A stretch of 63,148 nt of DNA, the filler included, from Octopus bimaculoides (lineage: Eukaryota), in assembly GCF_001194135.2 (NCBI RefSeq). It is 4 parts of 4 records of this genome, joined end to end, with 100 filler letters (N's around TTAATTAATTAA, not from the genome) between each part and the next. Parts side by side here need not be neighbours in the genome. Positions count along the whole stretch, not along the records: positions 40,555 to 63,148 come from NC_068988.1; 3 more parts are not named here. One strand, 5' to 3'. The notes under the pieces were generated by a model. It was given only the letters and a program-made list of their open reading frames with translations. It was not told where the DNA came from and did no database searches. Within the stretch, counting starts at the first letter, position 1. The number at the start of each line of letters is the position of its first letter. The translations under genes were made by a program, and so were the position numbers. This document shows positions 40,439-60,600 of this stretch, piece after piece.

Positions 40439-40903
40439 TTGTGCGCGGCATAGTNNNNNNNNNNNNNNNNNNNNNNNNNNNNNNNNNNNNNNNNNNNNTT
40501 AATTAATTAANNNNNNNNNNNNNNNNNNNNNNNNNNNNNNNNNNNNNNNNNNNNGGCACCGGACTCGCGGTCACAGGATCGCTGTTTCGATTCCCAGACC
40601 GGGCGTTGTGTGTTTATTGAGCGAAAACACATAAAGCTCCACGAGGTTCTGGCAGGGGATGGTGGTGAACCCTGCTGTACTCTTCCACCACAACTTTCTC
40701 TCACTCTTACTTCCTGTTTCTCTTGTGCCTGTAATTCAAAGGGTCAGCCTTGTCACACTGTGTCATGCTAAATATCCCCGAGAACTACGTTAAGGCTACA
40801 CGTGTCTGTGGAGTGCTCAGTCACTTGCACGTTAATTTCACGAGCAGGCTGTTCCGTTGATCGGATCAACTGGAACCCTCGACGTCGTAAGCGACGGAGT
40901 GCC
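40439..40903 (+). mobile_element. tRNA-derived SINE, third family, split by an assembly gap
   Basis: Head tgtgcgcggcatagt before the gap, continues ggcaccggactcgcggtcacagg...gtttcgattccc; matches 33373-33720. Confidence 0.8.
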
Positions 40904-41432: not shown

Positions 41433-41641
41433 TCAGCATATGAAATTATGGAAAAAAGGCCAATGATGATGACAGCAATGTTCGTGGAAGGGGTGTGACG
41501 AGGTGTAAGGGATATATCCACAACAGGCATTATTAGACCAATGTCGTTTTGGAACGATATGACTGTTGCAACATATTTCCCAAAATTGGTTATGCGGTCC
41601 ACAATCAGGAGGTTGAGTCCAGCCATTGACAGAGGACATTG
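41433..41641 (-). CDS. Gene B exon 2: galaxin-like, His-rich mature peptide
   Basis: Acceptor ttttcctattttacag|, phase 1: (A)MSSVNGWTQPPDCGPHNQFWEICCNSHIVPKRHWSNNACCGYIPYTSSHPFHEHCCHHHWPFFHNFIC*; 8 Cys, three CC pairs, 10 His. Confidence 0.85.
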
Positions 41642-48437: not shown

Positions 48438-48486
48438 CTGTTACAAAGAGCAGGAAAGCGAAGATAATTAATGTTTTTTGCATCAT
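48438..48486 (-). CDS. Gene B exon 1: signal peptide
   Basis: MMQKTLIIFAFLLFVT+g then donor |gtaaga; 49 nt, phase 1, joins exon 2 in frame. Confidence 0.85.
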
Positions 48487-48517: not shown

Positions 48518-48552
48518 TCTGATACTGAAAGACTTTACCATCGATATTTATG
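48518..48552 (-). promoter_or_regulatory. Candidate core promoter of gene B
   Basis: cATAAATA followed ~27-33 nt later by TCAGT/ATCAGA Inr-like motifs; alignable with gene A. Confidence 0.55.
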
Positions 48553-48917
48553 CGTTTGGGGAACAATTGAAGGGGACTTCAAAACGCTTGTGATGAGAAT
48601 TTCTCACAAAACTAATTAAGAAAAGAAAATATGCAAATTAAGACTGGCAGATATCATCATGATTACAAATATGTAAAAGTTATTTTTAGTCATCTACTTT
48701 TGTTTGTAGCAAACTCAATTGTTTTCATTAAGGCAAACTGGATTGGTGGTGTTTGAAATTATCACGTTTTCTAACACCCGATAGCAATATTATTATAACT
48801 TGATTAAGTTTCATATACAGAGAATGAGTCACTAGAAGCAATCCTACTTAAGATATCAAATAGTTCAAGTTTGTGAATTTTAAAATCAAAATACAAATTT
48901 AAACATGTTTAAACGTT

Positions 48918-50989: not shown

Positions 50990-51780
50990 AAGTCTTGATT
51001 TAAATCCACTACAAACCAACTGATTCCTAACAATACTTTCTTCTATTCACCTCCAACCACACAAAGCACACGAAAAGAAACATTCCTTTTAATCTAGCGA
51101 AAAGAATTTGCAGAATTGTTTCAAATTAGGAAACGTGGGACAAAAGACCCCCAAGAATTAAAGGAAATTCTACTCAAAAGTCAGTACCCATCACCATTAA
51201 CTGATAATAGAATAGAACGGGCCAAGGCAATAAACATCCAAGATTCACGAAAACCGAAACACACCGAAGGTACGCTTTCATATCTCTCAACACACAATCC
51301 AAGAAATACAGAAGCTTACACCATTATACACAAGAACATCCCACTACTGTGCCAAGACCCGCGATTAAAAAAGTACTCGAAACCCATAAAATAATAAAAA
51401 GCAAGAGACAACTCAAATCCTTAAAAAATTACTCAGCAATGCAAAATTACCCACCACAAATCAAATATCAACCGTCAAAAAATGTAATCGCTCTAATTGC
51501 GGGACTTGCATTCGCCACATTGAGGGTACAATGTTAGGACACACTTTTGTTGTAAAAAATTTCACCTGCGCATCAAAAAATTAATTTATGTAATTAGATG
51601 TAAAGAGTGCCACAAAGATTACTCAGAGAAAACTAGACATAACATCAGAGACAGGATAACAGTCCACCTCCAACATTTACGGGGCCCCACCACATGAAAG
51701 ATGCCACGCAGTGGCCACTTAGCTCTCTGTGCAAAAGCAACTCTCCTAAATTCCAAGTTTTCTACTTTTATTGGAATTTT
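50990..51780 (+). mobile_element. Penelope-like RT thumb plus GIY-YIG fragment
   Basis: HYKPTDS..SNHTKHTKRNIPFNLAKRICRI...IYVIRCKECHKDY; frameshifted. Confidence 0.8.
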
Positions 51781-56302: not shown

Positions 56303-56308
56303 TTTATT
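56303..56308 (-). other. Poly(A) signal AATAAA of gene A
   Basis: About 140 nt after the stop; position conserved with gene B. Confidence 0.65.
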
Positions 56309-56447
56309 ACATGGGAAGACTAGTAATCTATATAATGAAAGTTATTATATAATTGATTGAATTATTGAGAGAGAATCGAGCAATTTATCATTTCATTCTT
56401 GGACGATTACAGAATTAGTATGAACTAATATCAAGCTGGGATTGACC

Positions 56448-56611
56448 TCAACATACGAGTACATAGATATACCACCAAGGCCAACAGAACCACCATCGGC
56501 GACAACAAAATCTACGCCACCAGGGGATTATTTGTGTTCCACAACAACTATGAGTATATGGATTATACAATTGACCACCACAGACATTCCATTGATGGCA
56601 AGACTGTACTG
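56448..56611 (-). CDS. Gene A exon 2: galaxin-like, Trp/Arg-rich mature peptide
   Basis: Acceptor ttttcttattttacag|, phase 1: (A)VQSCHQWNVCGGQLYNPYTHSCCGTQIIPWWRRFCCRRWWFCWPWWYIYVLVC*; 8 Cys, 8 Trp, 4 Arg, no acidic residue. Confidence 0.85.
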
Positions 56612-56929
56612 CTGTAAAATAAGAAAATAATCGAAATGAGAATTAAACAGTTCTTATTGCATTAAAAAGCTATATAAAATCTATTTAAATTATATGAAAA
56701 CTTGTTTTAGAAAAGCTAATTCAGAAAGACATGAATGTATGGAAATGTATGGTGATCTTTTTCTGTTTGGCTGCTGCTTTTCAATTTCATCTATTTTGTC
56801 CCAATTAATTTCAAGTTTGGTGTAGTTTTGCATTGACACAAAATTAATTCTCTGTTCTTAAAACAACAAAATATATTGCTTACACTTTTTACCGCACGAA
56901 ATGCATATCACTTGCGTAAACTATAAAAT

Positions 56930-57101
56930 ATATGCTCATTATTTACATTATTTACATTTGATGGATATTTGTCCTCATCTTGTTTCTTGTTAACACAACG
57001 TTTTGGCTGATACACCCTCCAGCCTTCTTCAGGTGTCTTGGGGAAATTTCGAACCTGGGTTCTCATTCCTAAGGTATTGTTCAATGTTGTTGTTGTTGTT
57101 G

Positions 57102-57175
<74 letters not shown>
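56930..57175 (-). mobile_element. Inverted copy of the 3' half of the Penelope terminal/SINE-like unit
   Basis: Reverse complement of 58050-58256; hammerhead GAAA mutated to AAAA. Confidence 0.8.
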
Positions 57176-57490
57176 GTTCAGTAGTTTTATTTTTATAACG
57201 TGCTTTCACTTCACTACCGAGCGCAGCTCTGTGCGCCTTGGGTATGTGCTGTGGATTGCTGTGGTGCTCCTATGTTTACTGTATTGAAAGTGTTTTGCGT
57301 AGAATGTGTGCAGTACCCAGTAGTGCAATTTTCTGTATGTTATATATATTTGTAAGTTCTGGTGTTTTTGTTATGTATTTGTCTGAATATTTTTTTAATT
57401 ATACCTAAGGCACCTACTATGATAGGAATTGTTTCTGTTTTTAGATTCCACATTCGAGTTATCTCTATTTCCAGGTCTCTCTGCTGGTAT
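57176..57490 (-). mobile_element. R4/Dong-like retrotransposon 3' end
   Basis: DLEIEITRMWNLKTETIPIIVGALG...IQKIALLGTAHILRKTLSIQ*, short UTR, ending in (TAA)n. Confidence 0.85.
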
Positions 57491-57930
57491 TGATACAAAA
57501 GATATGTGGCCCATATGACATCAGGACAGTATTCAAGAGTAGTACAACACTTAGCAAATATCTCCTTCGTGTAAAACCACCAATAGAAGAGAATATGACC
57601 AAAGACTGCGTGTACTCCATCCCATGCAGCTGTGGTAGGTTATACAAAGGCGAAACATGCCACTCCCTCAAAATAAGGGTAGACGAACATCGCAAAGCTG
57701 TGACACGAAGAGATATTGATAAATCGGGTATAGCTGATCATGTATAGAATAATAGAGACCACCTCCCTCTGTGGGATGAAGTTAAAATAATAGACAGAGA
57801 ACACCACTGGAAAATAAGGAAACTAAAAGAAGCAGCACATATGCTAGGACACAACAACCTCCTAAGCAGACCGAGTGCAGTTATGAGCAACATATGGGAA
57901 CTGGTGTTAAGGAAGGATAGAAAATATTAG
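57490..57930 (+). mobile_element. Penelope GIY-YIG endonuclease fragment
   Basis: DCVYSIPCSCGRLYKGET...RVDEH...SGIADHV*...KIRKLKEAAHM. Confidence 0.85.
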
Positions 57931-58256
57931 ATTTATAAGCCCCAAAATTCCCTCCATAATTGTCCATGGGCATATGGCGTAGTGGTTAAGAGCGCGGGCT
58001 ACTAACCTCAAGATTCCGAGTTCGATTCCAAGCAGTGACCTGAACAATGATAATAATAATAATAATAATAATAATGACAACATCGAAATATACCTTAGGA
58101 ATGAGAACCCAGGTTCGAAATTTCCCCAAGACACCTGAAGAAGGCTGGAGGGTATATCAGCCGAAACGTTGTGTTAACAGCAAACAAGATGAGGACAAAT
58201 ATCCATCGAATGTAAGTAATGTACATAATTCCTCATCTCTTAAATATAGAACTGAA
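57931..58256 (+). mobile_element. Penelope terminal region containing tRNA-like head, (AAT)n and hammerhead
   Basis: tggcgtagtggtt (A box) and gttcgattcc (B box) within 57975-58030, directly after the GIY-YIG stop. Confidence 0.7.
58130..58175 (+). ncRNA. Minimal type I hammerhead motif
   Basis: GACAC-CUGAAGA-A-GGCUG-loop-CAGCC-GAAAC-GUU-GUGUU; palindromic ACGU stem III. Confidence 0.65.
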
Positions 58257-58843
58257 GATATATGCTGGTTACTCGTTTTTTGATCATTTTGTTTTTGCTT
58301 ATTAAATGCTTACAGCACGTGTCATCGTACAATGTTGACGTTATCCTTTTGTAGTCTCACGATCTCAATCACGCACAAAATGATAGCTTCCAAATGCGGT
58401 TTTTTCGACTGGATTTAAATTATCACAATTGAAACGCCTATAACTTGTTAAAGATTCTTTTGTGGAACAAGTGATATAGGCCCTACTACGTAGCGTGAAA
58501 AGTGACATAAATACACAAAATTTGAATATTTTGACTGAAATTTTAAAATTTCAAAAATTGCAGTCAAACAGAAACGATCCACGTATGGAGGTCATATGTC
58601 AGCACTTTTTGCAGTTTTCAGCAGTTTCATTCGAACATGTTATCCTGTAAAACTTATAACACATGTGTTTGGAAAGTGGAAAAAAAAAAAGAAGGAAAAG
58701 TCGCTCGGTCAAATATTCATACCTGAAATTTGTATCATTTCGCATATTTATAGGGAAAAAAAGAATTAAATTTGGAATCTACTTTTTATATATTATGAAT
58801 ATATAAAGAAAAAAAAGATTTTTCTCAAATTTGTATCTACATA

Positions 58844-58878
<35 letters not shown>

Positions 58879-58890
58879 TTATTTATTTAT

Positions 58891-59934
58891 TTATTAAAAA
58901 TCTCAGAGTAGCAACAAAATTTAGAAATAATTTTTGTTACCAGTGGTCTAGCGAGAAGAAAAAAACTAGTCAATAGACTATACATTACTCATATAAATAC
59001 ATACACATAAGCGAGATGTCCATAATAGGACATCTGACCCGCTAGAAGAAGCAGTCAATCTCCAAACTCCAATTAGGGATAATTTCAAAAGAGAATGAAA
59101 AATAAAACATTTACCATCTGTTCCCTGAACCATGGTTCCAAGCTATTTTCAGCAAAATAAAATAATTTGCCAGGTCAGCTATCATCAGCAGGAAAGCCAA
59201 GATTAACATATAAACACGTGGCAATACATAGAACATGCCTCGTGCTTATATGTTATAATTTTTCATATCTACCCCGCATGTGCAGTTTTCTTATCGGCAG
59301 CAAATACAAAAAGTGCCGATTATCTTCCAGAAATTAGCCAAAAAATCATTATATCATTATTAATAAATCTCAGGGTAGCAAAAAAAATCTAGAAATTCTT
59401 TTTGCTTCCAGTGGTCTAGCTAGAAGAAAAGAACTAGCCAATAAACTATATATCATTCATATAAATTCATACACTGTACATTTAAACACATAAGATAAAT
59501 TTCCATAATAGTACATCTAACCCGCTAGAAGGAGCAGTCAAACTCCAAACTACAATTAGGGATAATTTCGAAAGGGAATGAAAAATAAAAACATTTACCA
59601 TCTTATTTCCTGAACCATGGTTTCAAGCTATTGTCAGCAAAATAAAATAATTTGCTAGGCCAGCTATCATCAGCAGGAAAGCCAAGATTAGTATATAAAC
59701 ACGATGCAATACATAGAACATGTCTCGTGCTTATATGTTATAATTTTTCATATCTACCGTGCATATGCGGTTTTCTTATCAGCAGCAAATACAAAAATGC
59801 TGATTTTCTTCCATAAATTAACCAAAAAATCATTTTCCCATTATTAATAAATCTCAGGGTAGCAAAAAAATTTAGAAATTCTTTTTGCTACCAGTGGTCT
59901 AGCAAGAAGAAAAAAAACTAGCCAATAGACTATA
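58891..59934. repeat. Tandem duplication, ~470-485-bp unit, ~2.2 copies, in gene A intron
   Basis: aatctcag.gtagc at 58899, 59366 and 59850; units align throughout. Confidence 0.9.
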
Positions 59935-60117
59935 AATGTACACTGTATGTGTTTATATGACTAATATATAGTCTATTGGTATTACTTCATCCCAATCATA
60001 TTTTTCTACAGCACAAAATGAATACAGCAGCACATAATGACTACAGCACAAAATGAATAAATAAATGCGAAAGTGAAGTAATGAGTAGGATGCAAATGTT
60101 TGTCTAGTTATTCTTAC

Positions 60118-60166
60118 CTGTTACAAGCAGCAGGAAAGCAACGAAGATAATTAATGCTTTTTGCAT
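60118..60166 (-). CDS. Gene A exon 1: signal peptide
   Basis: MQKALIIFVAFLLLVT+g then donor |gtaaga; 49 nt, phase 1; differs from gene B exon 1 by an in-frame 3-nt indel and substitutions. Confidence 0.85.
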
Positions 60167-60199: not shown

Positions 60200-60234
60200 A
60201 ACTGATCTTGGAAGGTTTACCATCGATACTTATG
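60200..60234 (-). promoter_or_regulatory. Candidate core promoter of gene A
   Basis: cATAAGTA about 31 nt upstream of ATCAGTT (TCAKTY Inr), 35-40 nt before the ATG. Confidence 0.6.
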
Positions 60235-60600
60235 CGTTTAGTGAACAATTGAAACGAACTTCAAAACGTGTGTGACAGGAATTTCTCACGAAAATAATTA
60301 AGAAAATAAAAAGATTCAAATTAAGACTAACAAATATCATTAGAAATATGAATATCTGCTGGTTATTTTTAATCTTCTGCTTTTGTTTGTGGAAACCTTA
60401 ATTGTTTTCATTAAAACAAGCTGTGTTGGTGGCATTTGAAATCATCACGTTTTGTAACAACTGATAGCAATACCATTATACCTTGATTAATTTTTCTACA
60501 GGGAATGAGTTACTAGAAGAAATCTTTCCTTTAAACTGTGAAACATATTAAGTTTATAAATTTTGAAATCAGAATATAAGCTTAAACATGTTTAAATGTT

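Follow-up and report, generated by a model that had tools for sequence, protein, structure and literature searches.

The window examined here is a stretch of 63,148 nucleotides, filler included, from the genome of Octopus bimaculoides, and our analysis concerns the piece at positions 40555-63148 (record NC_068988.1), which is eukaryotic, AT-rich and carries assembly gaps and microsatellites. Its minus strand bears a gene termed Gene A and, 11.7 kb downstream in the same orientation, a similarly built paralogue, Gene B (Table 1). Gene A is very probably a real two-exon gene of O. bimaculoides for a secreted, disulfide-rich 'mini-galaxin', and we hold both the gene and its family assignment to be right with high confidence. 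Its product ends in a tail rich in tryptophan (Trp) and arginine (Arg), for which a role in host defence can tentatively be proposed. Conservation of this tail in two further octopus species makes it a reasonable antimicrobial candidate.

Table 1. Features of Gene A and Gene B, in window coordinates
Feature	Position	Strand	Description
Gene A TATA-like element GCATAAGTATCGATGG	60220..60235	-	~55-70 nt 5' of the Gene A ATG, within a conserved promoter block of ~250 bp
Gene A exon 1, coding part	60118..60166	-	MQKALIIFVAFLLLVT and first base of codon 17; signal peptide; donor CAG/GTAAGA
Gene A intron	56612..60117	-	3.5 kb, phase 1; holds an inverted-repeat element and a tandem repeat
Gene A exon 2 (the interval first annotated)	56448..56611	-	last 2 bases of codon 17 (Ala), 53-residue cysteine-rich galaxin-like peptide, TGA
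Trp/Arg-rich tail PWWRRFCCRRWWFCWPWWYIYVLVC	56451..56525	-	modified last galaxin half-repeat (CC…CC…C); 7 of 8 Trp, 4 of 4 Arg
Gene A AATAAA polyadenylation signal	56303..56308	-	~140 nt past the stop codon, in the conserved 3' untranslated region
Gene B exon 1	48438..48486	-	MMQKTLIIFAFLLFVT and 1 base; donor and phase as in Gene A
Gene B exon 2	41433..41641	-	His/aromatic-rich galaxin-like peptide ending in EHCCHHHWPFFHNFIC before the stop; Pfam Galaxin_repeat 22.2 bits

Structure of Gene A and its orthologues

A search for starts of the signal-peptide type finds the start codon of Gene A, an ATG, at 60166 (-), upstream of a splice donor at 60118/60117. The acceptor of the second exon (ttttacag/CA at 56612/56611, phase 1) is preceded by a polypyrimidine tract before 56611. 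The last base of exon 1 and the opening CA of exon 2 make up a GCA codon for alanine, so that the two minus-strand exons join in phase to encode a precursor of 70 amino acids, MQKALIIFVAFLLLVT-A-VQSCHQWNVCGGQLYNPYTHSCCGTQIIPWWRRFCCRRWWFCWPWWYIYVLVC. Exon 2 alone reads (A)VQSCHQWNVCGGQLYNPYTHSCCGTQIIPWWRRFCCRRWWFCWPWWYIYVLVC and closes with a TGA at 56450..56448. The initial annotation had described positions 56448-56611 as the tail of Gene A, and the interval proves to be exactly one minus-strand exon, the C-terminal end of a gene for a secreted cysteine-rich peptide. Our way of building gene models is validated by Gene B, whose spliced product is residue for residue the UniRef entry A0A0L8G8N6_OCTBM (85 amino acids).

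Exon 1 encodes MQKALIIFVAFLLLVTA, with the n-region, the 12-residue hydrophobic core and the small residues at positions -1 and -3 of a secretion signal, as found in galaxin-like proteins. The signal peptide is common to all family members, and AlphaFold2 (AF2) predicts a helix at residues 2-20 of Gene A. A 16-mer from this exon, TTGTAACAGGTAAGAA, is confined to Gene A and Gene B; 0 matches would be expected by chance. Cleavage may fall after VQS, leaving a mature peptide of 50 residues, or after VTA, leaving 53. In the mature peptide, one N-terminal cysteine and a single canonical galaxin unit, CGGQLYNPYTHSCCGTQIIP, are followed by a final unit of modified form, in which the loops between the first CC pair, the second CC pair and the terminal cysteine are packed with Trp and Arg.

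The TATA-like element is also present in Gene B (48553..48538) and, by alignment, in the orthologue of Octopus vulgaris; from its position and conservation we infer a role in the promoter. The surrounding promoter block and the AATAAA signal are likewise conserved across Gene A, Gene B and O. vulgaris. Some 50 nt 5' of the TATA-like box lies a kB-like decamer, GAGAAATTCC (60278-60287, -), one mismatch away from GGGRNNYYCC and conserved in O. vulgaris (L001:9883). As an NF-kB-like promoter site it was rejected as not significant, one-mismatch sites occurring at 0.63 per 400 bp in the piece.

The orthologous locus of O. vulgaris (L001) has two Gene A-like exons in phase 1 around an 8-kb intron, with flanks 74-78% identical to the window. 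Its second exon lies at L001:18099-18268, and the parts of the Gene A intron that flank an inverted-repeat element (see below) show ~77% identity to the O. vulgaris intron. Conserved exon and untranslated-region patterns, when used to look for further family genes near the O. vulgaris orthologue, matched this locus only. In Octopus sinensis an intact orthologous exon is found at L004:389-559 (+), at ~74.71 Mb of CM016866.1 and 9.4 kb 5' of the gene for XP_036361356, and protein searches returned no O. sinensis protein with the sequence of that exon. The tail of the O. vulgaris orthologue ends in IIPWWRAHCCRGWLHGWPWWNRHWHWHLVC before the stop codon (10 Trp, net charge +4, no acidic residue), and that of O. 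sinensis, IIPWWRAHCCRGWLHGWPWWNRHWHWYLVC, matches it save for one H→Y exchange.

Exon 2 is coding rather than a random open reading frame (ORF), because it has a signal exon in phase and an intact two-exon orthologue in O. vulgaris, with 7 of 8 Trp and 7 of 8 cysteines conserved. The plus strand at the same place also carries an open frame, a Pro/Thr-rich ORF containing IPPRPTEPPSATTKSTPPG (56442-56630), in which the Trp run would be the complement of CCA proline codons, and this antisense frame is open in O. vulgaris as well. Such openness is expected from composition, however, since TGG and TGT complement CCA and ACA. The plus-strand frame was rejected as it lacks an ATG, splice partners, homologues and a Pfam match, whereas on the minus strand a signal exon matches in phase, the stop directly after the terminal cysteine is conserved and the homology to galaxin-like proteins is significant; the chance that the plus strand is the true coding strand is extremely remote.

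Relation to galaxin-like proteins

An exhaustive HMMER search with a profile of Gene A and Gene B against 1.84 billion representative proteins gave 35 matches with expectation values (E) below 1e-3. The best short octopus matches were A0A0L8FU16 of O. bimaculoides (P0003; 94 amino acids, 'Galaxin-like repeats domain-containing protein'; E=2e-13), CAI9727409.1 of O. vulgaris (P0004, A0AA36B4X6; 72 amino acids, 'hypothetical protein'; 2.5e-11) and XP_036361356.1 of O. sinensis (P0005; 96 amino acids, 'galaxin-like'; 3e-10). The other matches were multi-repeat galaxin-like proteins of many animals, reaching E=1e-15 (P0002), and none of them has a Trp-rich tail. A galaxin-like name in UniRef or NCBI is attached to P0003, P0005, P0036 and P0037. 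Compared directly, Gene A is 68% identical to CAI9727409.1 (E=3e-27) and matches A0A0L8FU16 with E=2e-16, the sole large difference from the latter being one missing internal CC…CC unit.

In Pfam, the Galaxin_repeat model (PF24748) is the top match for Gene A, although a weak one (E ~0.008-0.0095); apart from this and a weak match to IGFL, Pfam has nothing for Gene A. Scores against PF24748 are 16.3-16.5 bits for Gene A, 16.0 for CAI9727409.1, 22.2 for Gene B, 37.4 for XP_036361356.1 and 50.1 for A0A0L8FU16, with a gathering score of 28 bits. This threshold is a hard one for Gene A because the model extends over several repeats, 131 positions in all, and Gene A offers no more than two CC pairs, or ~1.5 galaxin units. 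As its own sequence stays below the threshold, its membership rests on homology to proteins that pass it, such as A0A0L8FU16. The di-cysteine unit of the family, C-G-x-x-x-Y-[ND]-P…CC-x-G-x-[IV]-x-P, is present in Gene A as VCGGQLYNPYTHSCCGTQIIPWWRRFCC and corresponds to profile positions 87-117. Since the Pfam match of A0A0L8FU16 extends through its tail to the final residue, Gene A can be read as a truncated, divergent member of the galaxin-like group, with the tail as its remodelled terminal repeat. The disulfide scaffold is thus galaxin-like, by the weak Pfam match and by homology to Pfam-positive octopus proteins, as was implied by the reference to the squid galaxin EsGal1 in the initial annotation.

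On the available sequences, Gene A is part of a small, tandemly arranged, octopus-restricted subfamily of short galaxin-like proteins, whose signal peptides, promoters and untranslated regions are near-identical and whose mature regions diverge fast. Gene A shares with the short octopus proteins a signal peptide of the form M(M)Q[KR]TLIIFxxLLFVTAVQS, the two-exon phase-1 structure, the N-terminal cysteine, the CC repeats and a terminal cysteine abutting the stop codon. A tail motif, IPWW[KR]xxCC.R.W…WP/WW…LVC, is common to Gene A, CAI9727409 and A0A0L8FU16, the last of which ends in LIPWWKSECCIRHWWWPHEHLVC before its stop codon and has one repeat more than Gene A. The most hydrophobic end is that of Gene A, YIYVLVC, compared with NRHWHWHLVC in O. 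vulgaris.

Gene A differs from its short octopus paralogues in an extra cysteine pair (SC…FC). The two cysteines beyond the family pattern lie in VQSC… (56609-56598, -) and …WWFCW (56486-56478, -), giving a total of 8. The O. vulgaris orthologue has only the first of them and hence an odd total of 7, which suggests a lineage-specific extra disulfide or, in O. vulgaris, a free thiol or dimerisation.

The 70-residue product of Gene A has no exact match in a collection of 15 billion proteins. A word-index protein search with the 53-residue peptide likewise gave no match, and with the alignment of Gene A and Gene B it returned Gene B itself only. Absence from Logan is uninformative for Gene A, since annotated family members have no Logan members either. 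In the literature we found no paper that names the accessions of the family members, and none on octopus Trp-rich galaxin-like peptides; the papers found give no function for any of the short octopus proteins. A Trp-rich tail on a galaxin of 1.5 repeats is not described in the literature searched; the galaxin family is known, and orthologues and paralogues are deposited under hypothetical or galaxin-like names. Gene A is missing from the O. bimaculoides protein sets that were searched and should be added to the annotation.

The tryptophan- and arginine-rich tail and its possible function

The mature peptide of Gene A contains 8 Trp, 4 Arg and 8 cysteines, with 0 Asp/Glu and 0 Lys, and has a net charge of +4. 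The counts of Trp, Arg and acidic residues given in the initial annotation for a 50-residue mature peptide hold, and the composition is the same for the 53-residue form. The densest part, the string PWWRRFCCRRWWFCWPWW, sits at 56525..56472 (-). No stop-free window in any of the six frames of the piece holds more than the seven Trp found here within 23 residues. When the piece was shuffled 100 times with its composition preserved, the highest count was 3 in 82, 2 in 11, 4 in 6 and 5 in 1, and never 7, so the Trp density is real and beyond chance. On the Wimley-White interfacial scale the tail has a predicted free energy of -14.6 kcal/mol, and indolicidin one of -6.2. The tail thus has the Trp/Arg-rich, cationic, acid-free and interface-favouring composition of membrane-active peptides, a feature of working alike and not of membership in a family.

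Structure prediction gave a mean predicted local distance difference test score (pLDDT) of 70.5, with ~80 for the galaxin core. The model has no meaningful match in the Protein Data Bank (PDB) by Foldseek (best E=3.6), and a sequence profile search of PDB found no neighbour. A glycosylphosphatidylinositol-anchor or transmembrane reading of the hydrophobic C-terminus was rejected by inspection, because an Arg stands at ω+2 after the CC pair, the hydrophobic run is only 15 residues long and the orthologue has NRHWHWH in its place.

Evolutionary constraint on the exon is uneven. Between O. bimaculoides and O. vulgaris, non-synonymous divergence (dN) over exon 2 is 0.25 and synonymous divergence (dS) is 0.30, with a ratio (ω) of 0.85. 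At Cys and Trp codons, by contrast, 14 of 16 are conserved (Trp 7/8, Cys 7/8) with a dN of 0.058, as against a dN of 0.38, a dS of 0.32 and an ω of 1.19 over the other 37 codons. The low dN implies that Trp is under constraint in the way that Cys is, whether for scaffold or for function. The codon comparison shows purifying selection on Cys and Trp, with neutral or positive evolution elsewhere in the mature peptide.

These data also bear on the idea that Gene A is a decaying or silent duplicate, whose intact ORF is unexpressed or yields a functionless product and whose tail arose by drift and slippage of TGG/CAT-TGG units. The overall ω would suit it, as would the absence of the product from O. 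bimaculoides protein collections (and apparently of the O. sinensis orthologue too), the 1.3-kb transposon-like insertion in the intron and a hexamer-repeat insert that varies the tail length in O. vulgaris. However, three species retain an intact ORF, start, splice sites, stop position, TATA-like box and poly(A) signal at a neutral divergence of ~25%, and the dN at Cys/Trp codons is 0.058 where ~0.3 is neutral (a back-of-envelope binomial chance of ~0.002). Moreover, the gene was called by the O. vulgaris annotators. We therefore regard a silent duplicate as quite improbable.

The hexamer insert is a (CATTGG) repeat at L001:18220-18260, which encodes HWHWH where O. bimaculoides has YIYV. Tail length and composition seem, from this repeat, to change by replication slippage.

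Galaxins of the squid Euprymna scolopes offer the closest experimental parallel. The ten galaxins EsGal1-10 are the most organ-specific transcripts of squid symbiotic epithelia, and synthetic single galaxin repeats, EsGal1R3 and EsGal2R4, reduced or abolished the growth of several bacteria at 50-300 uM (PMC12773714). Inhibition of bacteria by a peptide derived from EsGal1, which the initial annotation had mentioned, is borne out by these experiments, and they imply that a single galaxin repeat can be an antimicrobial unit. Gene A resembles EsGal1-10 in being secreted and cationic and in carrying di-cysteine tandem repeats of one Pfam family. The squid proteins, likened here by description only, are larger; they have as many as 7 repeats and are charged between +5 and +21.5. 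A Trp-rich tail has not been reported for them, and the word 'tryptophan' is absent from the text of the paper (PMC12773714).

The likeness to indolicidin and tritrpticin, for its part, is one of composition. The tail shares with them short motifs (WPWW, RRF, PWW), cationic character and strong predicted interface affinity, yet its Smith-Waterman scores of 40 and 33, respectively, were equalled by 218 and 428 of 1000 shuffled tails. As the scores are no better than those of shuffles, the resemblance is not homology, in keeping with the convergence proposed at the outset. Indolicidin and tritrpticin are cysteine-free 13-mers cut from mammalian precursors with a cathelin domain; the Gene A motif sits among five cysteines of a galaxin-like fold, and the gene encodes it directly as the C-terminal end. 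Correspondingly, Pfam gave no cathelin match for Gene A, and its 25-residue tail, with 5 cysteines, is not a linear cysteine-free peptide.

Wheat puroindolines are closer in design. These lipid-binding and antimicrobial proteins of ~13 kDa present a Trp-rich loop, WRWWKWWK, on a 10-cysteine scaffold. Gene A follows the same principle, a Trp/basic segment on a disulfide-bonded secreted protein, in ~6 kDa and in an unrelated fold and family: no plant lipid-transfer protein/amylase-inhibitor match was found in Pfam, and 312 of 1000 shuffles align with puroindoline as well as the tail does. The beta-hairpin peptides tachyplesin, polyphemusin and arenicin gave local alignment scores no higher than the shuffled mean, and 641-802 of 1000 shuffles did as well. 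Homology to indolicidin, tritrpticin, puroindoline, tachyplesin, polyphemusin, arenicin and lactoferricin was accordingly rejected, as no score rose above shuffled controls.

We propose that the secreted, disulfide-locked core of Gene A would present a cationic (+4, acid-free) and extremely interface-seeking tail, which may insert at the interface of anionic microbial membranes, so that the peptide would act in defence of the host on epithelial or mucosal surfaces. This mechanism is suggested because it is the mode of Trp/Arg-rich antimicrobial peptides and has also been proposed for the Euprymna galaxin repeat peptides; in its favour, the net charge of +4 and the lack of acidic residues are kept in Gene A and its orthologues. 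Taken whole, the statement that Gene A is a real mini-galaxin gene acting as a membrane-active host-defence effector falls just short of an even chance in our estimate. The antimicrobial, membrane-active function, argued by analogy, is a tentative assignment, possible rather than probable. A broader view is doubtful: octopuses would have lineage-specific 'mini-galaxins', tandem and fast-evolving secreted peptides of 50-80 amino acids, whose last repeat may form a disulfide-held membrane- or metal-binding warhead, Trp-rich and cationic in the Gene A lineage and His/aromatic-rich in the Gene B lineage.

Several points weigh against a defence role, or against the assignment on which it builds. 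Gene A alone remains below the Pfam gathering score (16.5 versus 28 bits), and the overall ω of ~0.85 is compatible with weak constraint. Gene A, and apparently its O. sinensis orthologue, are absent from the protein collections searched, which might be a sign of weak or narrowly confined expression. The tail is not confidently modelled by AF2 (pLDDT <50 for residues 57-70), and WWFCWPWWYIYVLVC, being extremely hydrophobic, could instead promote aggregation or association with a matrix. The Euprymna peptides, on which the analogy draws, are active only at the high concentrations of 50-300 uM. Finally, the cationic Trp/Arg character is not family-wide: paralogues range from -1 to +3, and their tails are rich in His, Tyr or Phe. 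What the family does share is a tail of aromatic residues and His (23-36% W/F/Y/H), anchored by CC and the terminal cysteine, a property no less suggestive of stacking by aromatic residues on chitin or glycans, or of metal binding, than of an attack on membranes.

Binding to chitin and carbohydrates usually depends on exposed aromatic residues, and His-rich proteins occur in cephalopod hard tissues. Gene A might accordingly encode a structural, matrix or glycan-binding galaxin, secreted into the chitinous sucker lining, the beak or radula, the egg capsule or mucus, where the aromatic/His tail would serve in chitin or glycan stacking, metal coordination or cross-linking, much as galaxins originally served in the skeletal organic matrices of corals and molluscs. 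Membership of the galaxin-like homology group, the family-wide tail composition, which is not consistently cationic, and the conservation of Trp as if it were a scaffold residue all fit such a role, and roles of galaxins in calcification and shell formation have been hypothesised (PMC12773714). Nevertheless, with ~50 residues and 1.5 repeats the peptide is very small beside matrix galaxins, its orthologues keep the +4 charge and the acid-free state, and the non-scaffold residues and paralogue mature exons evolve very fast, which is unusual for structural proteins and typical of defence, toxin and reproductive peptides. A structural role is in our view unlikely, although a serious contender.

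Conserved signal and untranslated regions beside a hyper-divergent mature exon in tandem duplicates are a pattern of defence, toxin and reproductive peptides, and unusual for structural proteins. The same signature, known in general from such families, would suit a secreted peptide used in signalling or offence, for instance as a toxin of venom or saliva, as a pheromone or in reproduction, whose target would be an animal receptor or membrane and not microbes, and so would the small disulfide-rich scaffold. Against this, no similarity to a toxin or pheromone family was found in Pfam or PDB, and the Euprymna galaxins are epithelial and tied to symbiotic organs (PMC12773714). We consider this possibility improbable.

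If the broader view of octopus mini-galaxins is true, they would be a structurally new class of antimicrobial peptides in invertebrates, convergent with both indolicidin and puroindoline, and the octopus, with neither a light organ nor an accessory nidamental gland, would have its own galaxin-based control of surface microbes. To our knowledge, adaptive immunity is absent from cephalopods, and only a few antimicrobial effectors have been identified in them. Galaxins have so far been tied to symbiotic organs of squid; if the defence reading is true, a short, directly encoded octopus peptide whose warhead is rich in Trp and Arg would carry galaxin-based defence over to cephalopods that are not symbiotic, and would supply a compact, disulfide-stabilised scaffold of ~6 kDa for study. 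Should the peptide be structural or silent instead, what is left is a divergent but otherwise ordinary member of an established repeat family.

Gene B and other elements of the window

Gene A and Gene B are 71-78% identical in promoter, signal exon, intron ends and 3' untranslated region (74% in the last), and their mature exons reach 48% identity in a forced alignment and are not aligned by blastn. Gene B is colinear over ~10 kb with the O. sinensis gene for XP_036361356 (L004:9048-19771), its positional orthologue. Introns and untranslated region of this pair are 72-76% identical, whereas the mature exon is unalignable at the DNA level. In the mature region 25 of 66 amino acids are identical (dN 0.57, dS 1.23), compared with a dN of 0.08 and a dS of 0.19 for the signal peptide. 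Both dN and dS of the mature exon exceed the flanking divergence, which suggests accelerated evolution or replacement of the exon by gene conversion. The locus is a clean, small case in which conserved signal, promoter and untranslated regions lie beside a hyper-divergent mature exon, as in toxin and defence families.

Between the two genes, a short ORF at 51524-51694 (+) has a weak GIY-YIG match (E=0.027, below threshold) and is probably the remnant of a Penelope-like retroelement. At the start of the piece, ~350 bases (40555-40903) match L004:28591-28227 in reverse orientation with 83% identity, and are probably an interspersed repeat common to octopus species. The beginning of this stretch looks tRNA-derived (GTTTCGATTCCCAGACCGGGCG); ARAGORN finds no tRNA in it, and a tRNA scan of the piece gave no tRNA genes.

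The intron of Gene A holds a 1.29-kb element at 56938-58229, 330 nt from the exon 2 acceptor, which is bounded by 187-nt inverted repeats (90% complementary) whose arms include an (ATT)n/(GTT)n run. The counterpart interval in O. vulgaris measures ~370 nt, as against ~1500 nt in the window, and the element looks like a lineage-specific foldback insertion or one resembling a miniature inverted-repeat transposable element. Within it, an ORF at 57490-57747 (+) appears GIY-YIG-like by eye and has no Pfam match. Further 5' in the same intron, positions 58889-59916 comprise ~2-3 tandem copies of a ~483-bp unit that are 87-92% identical.

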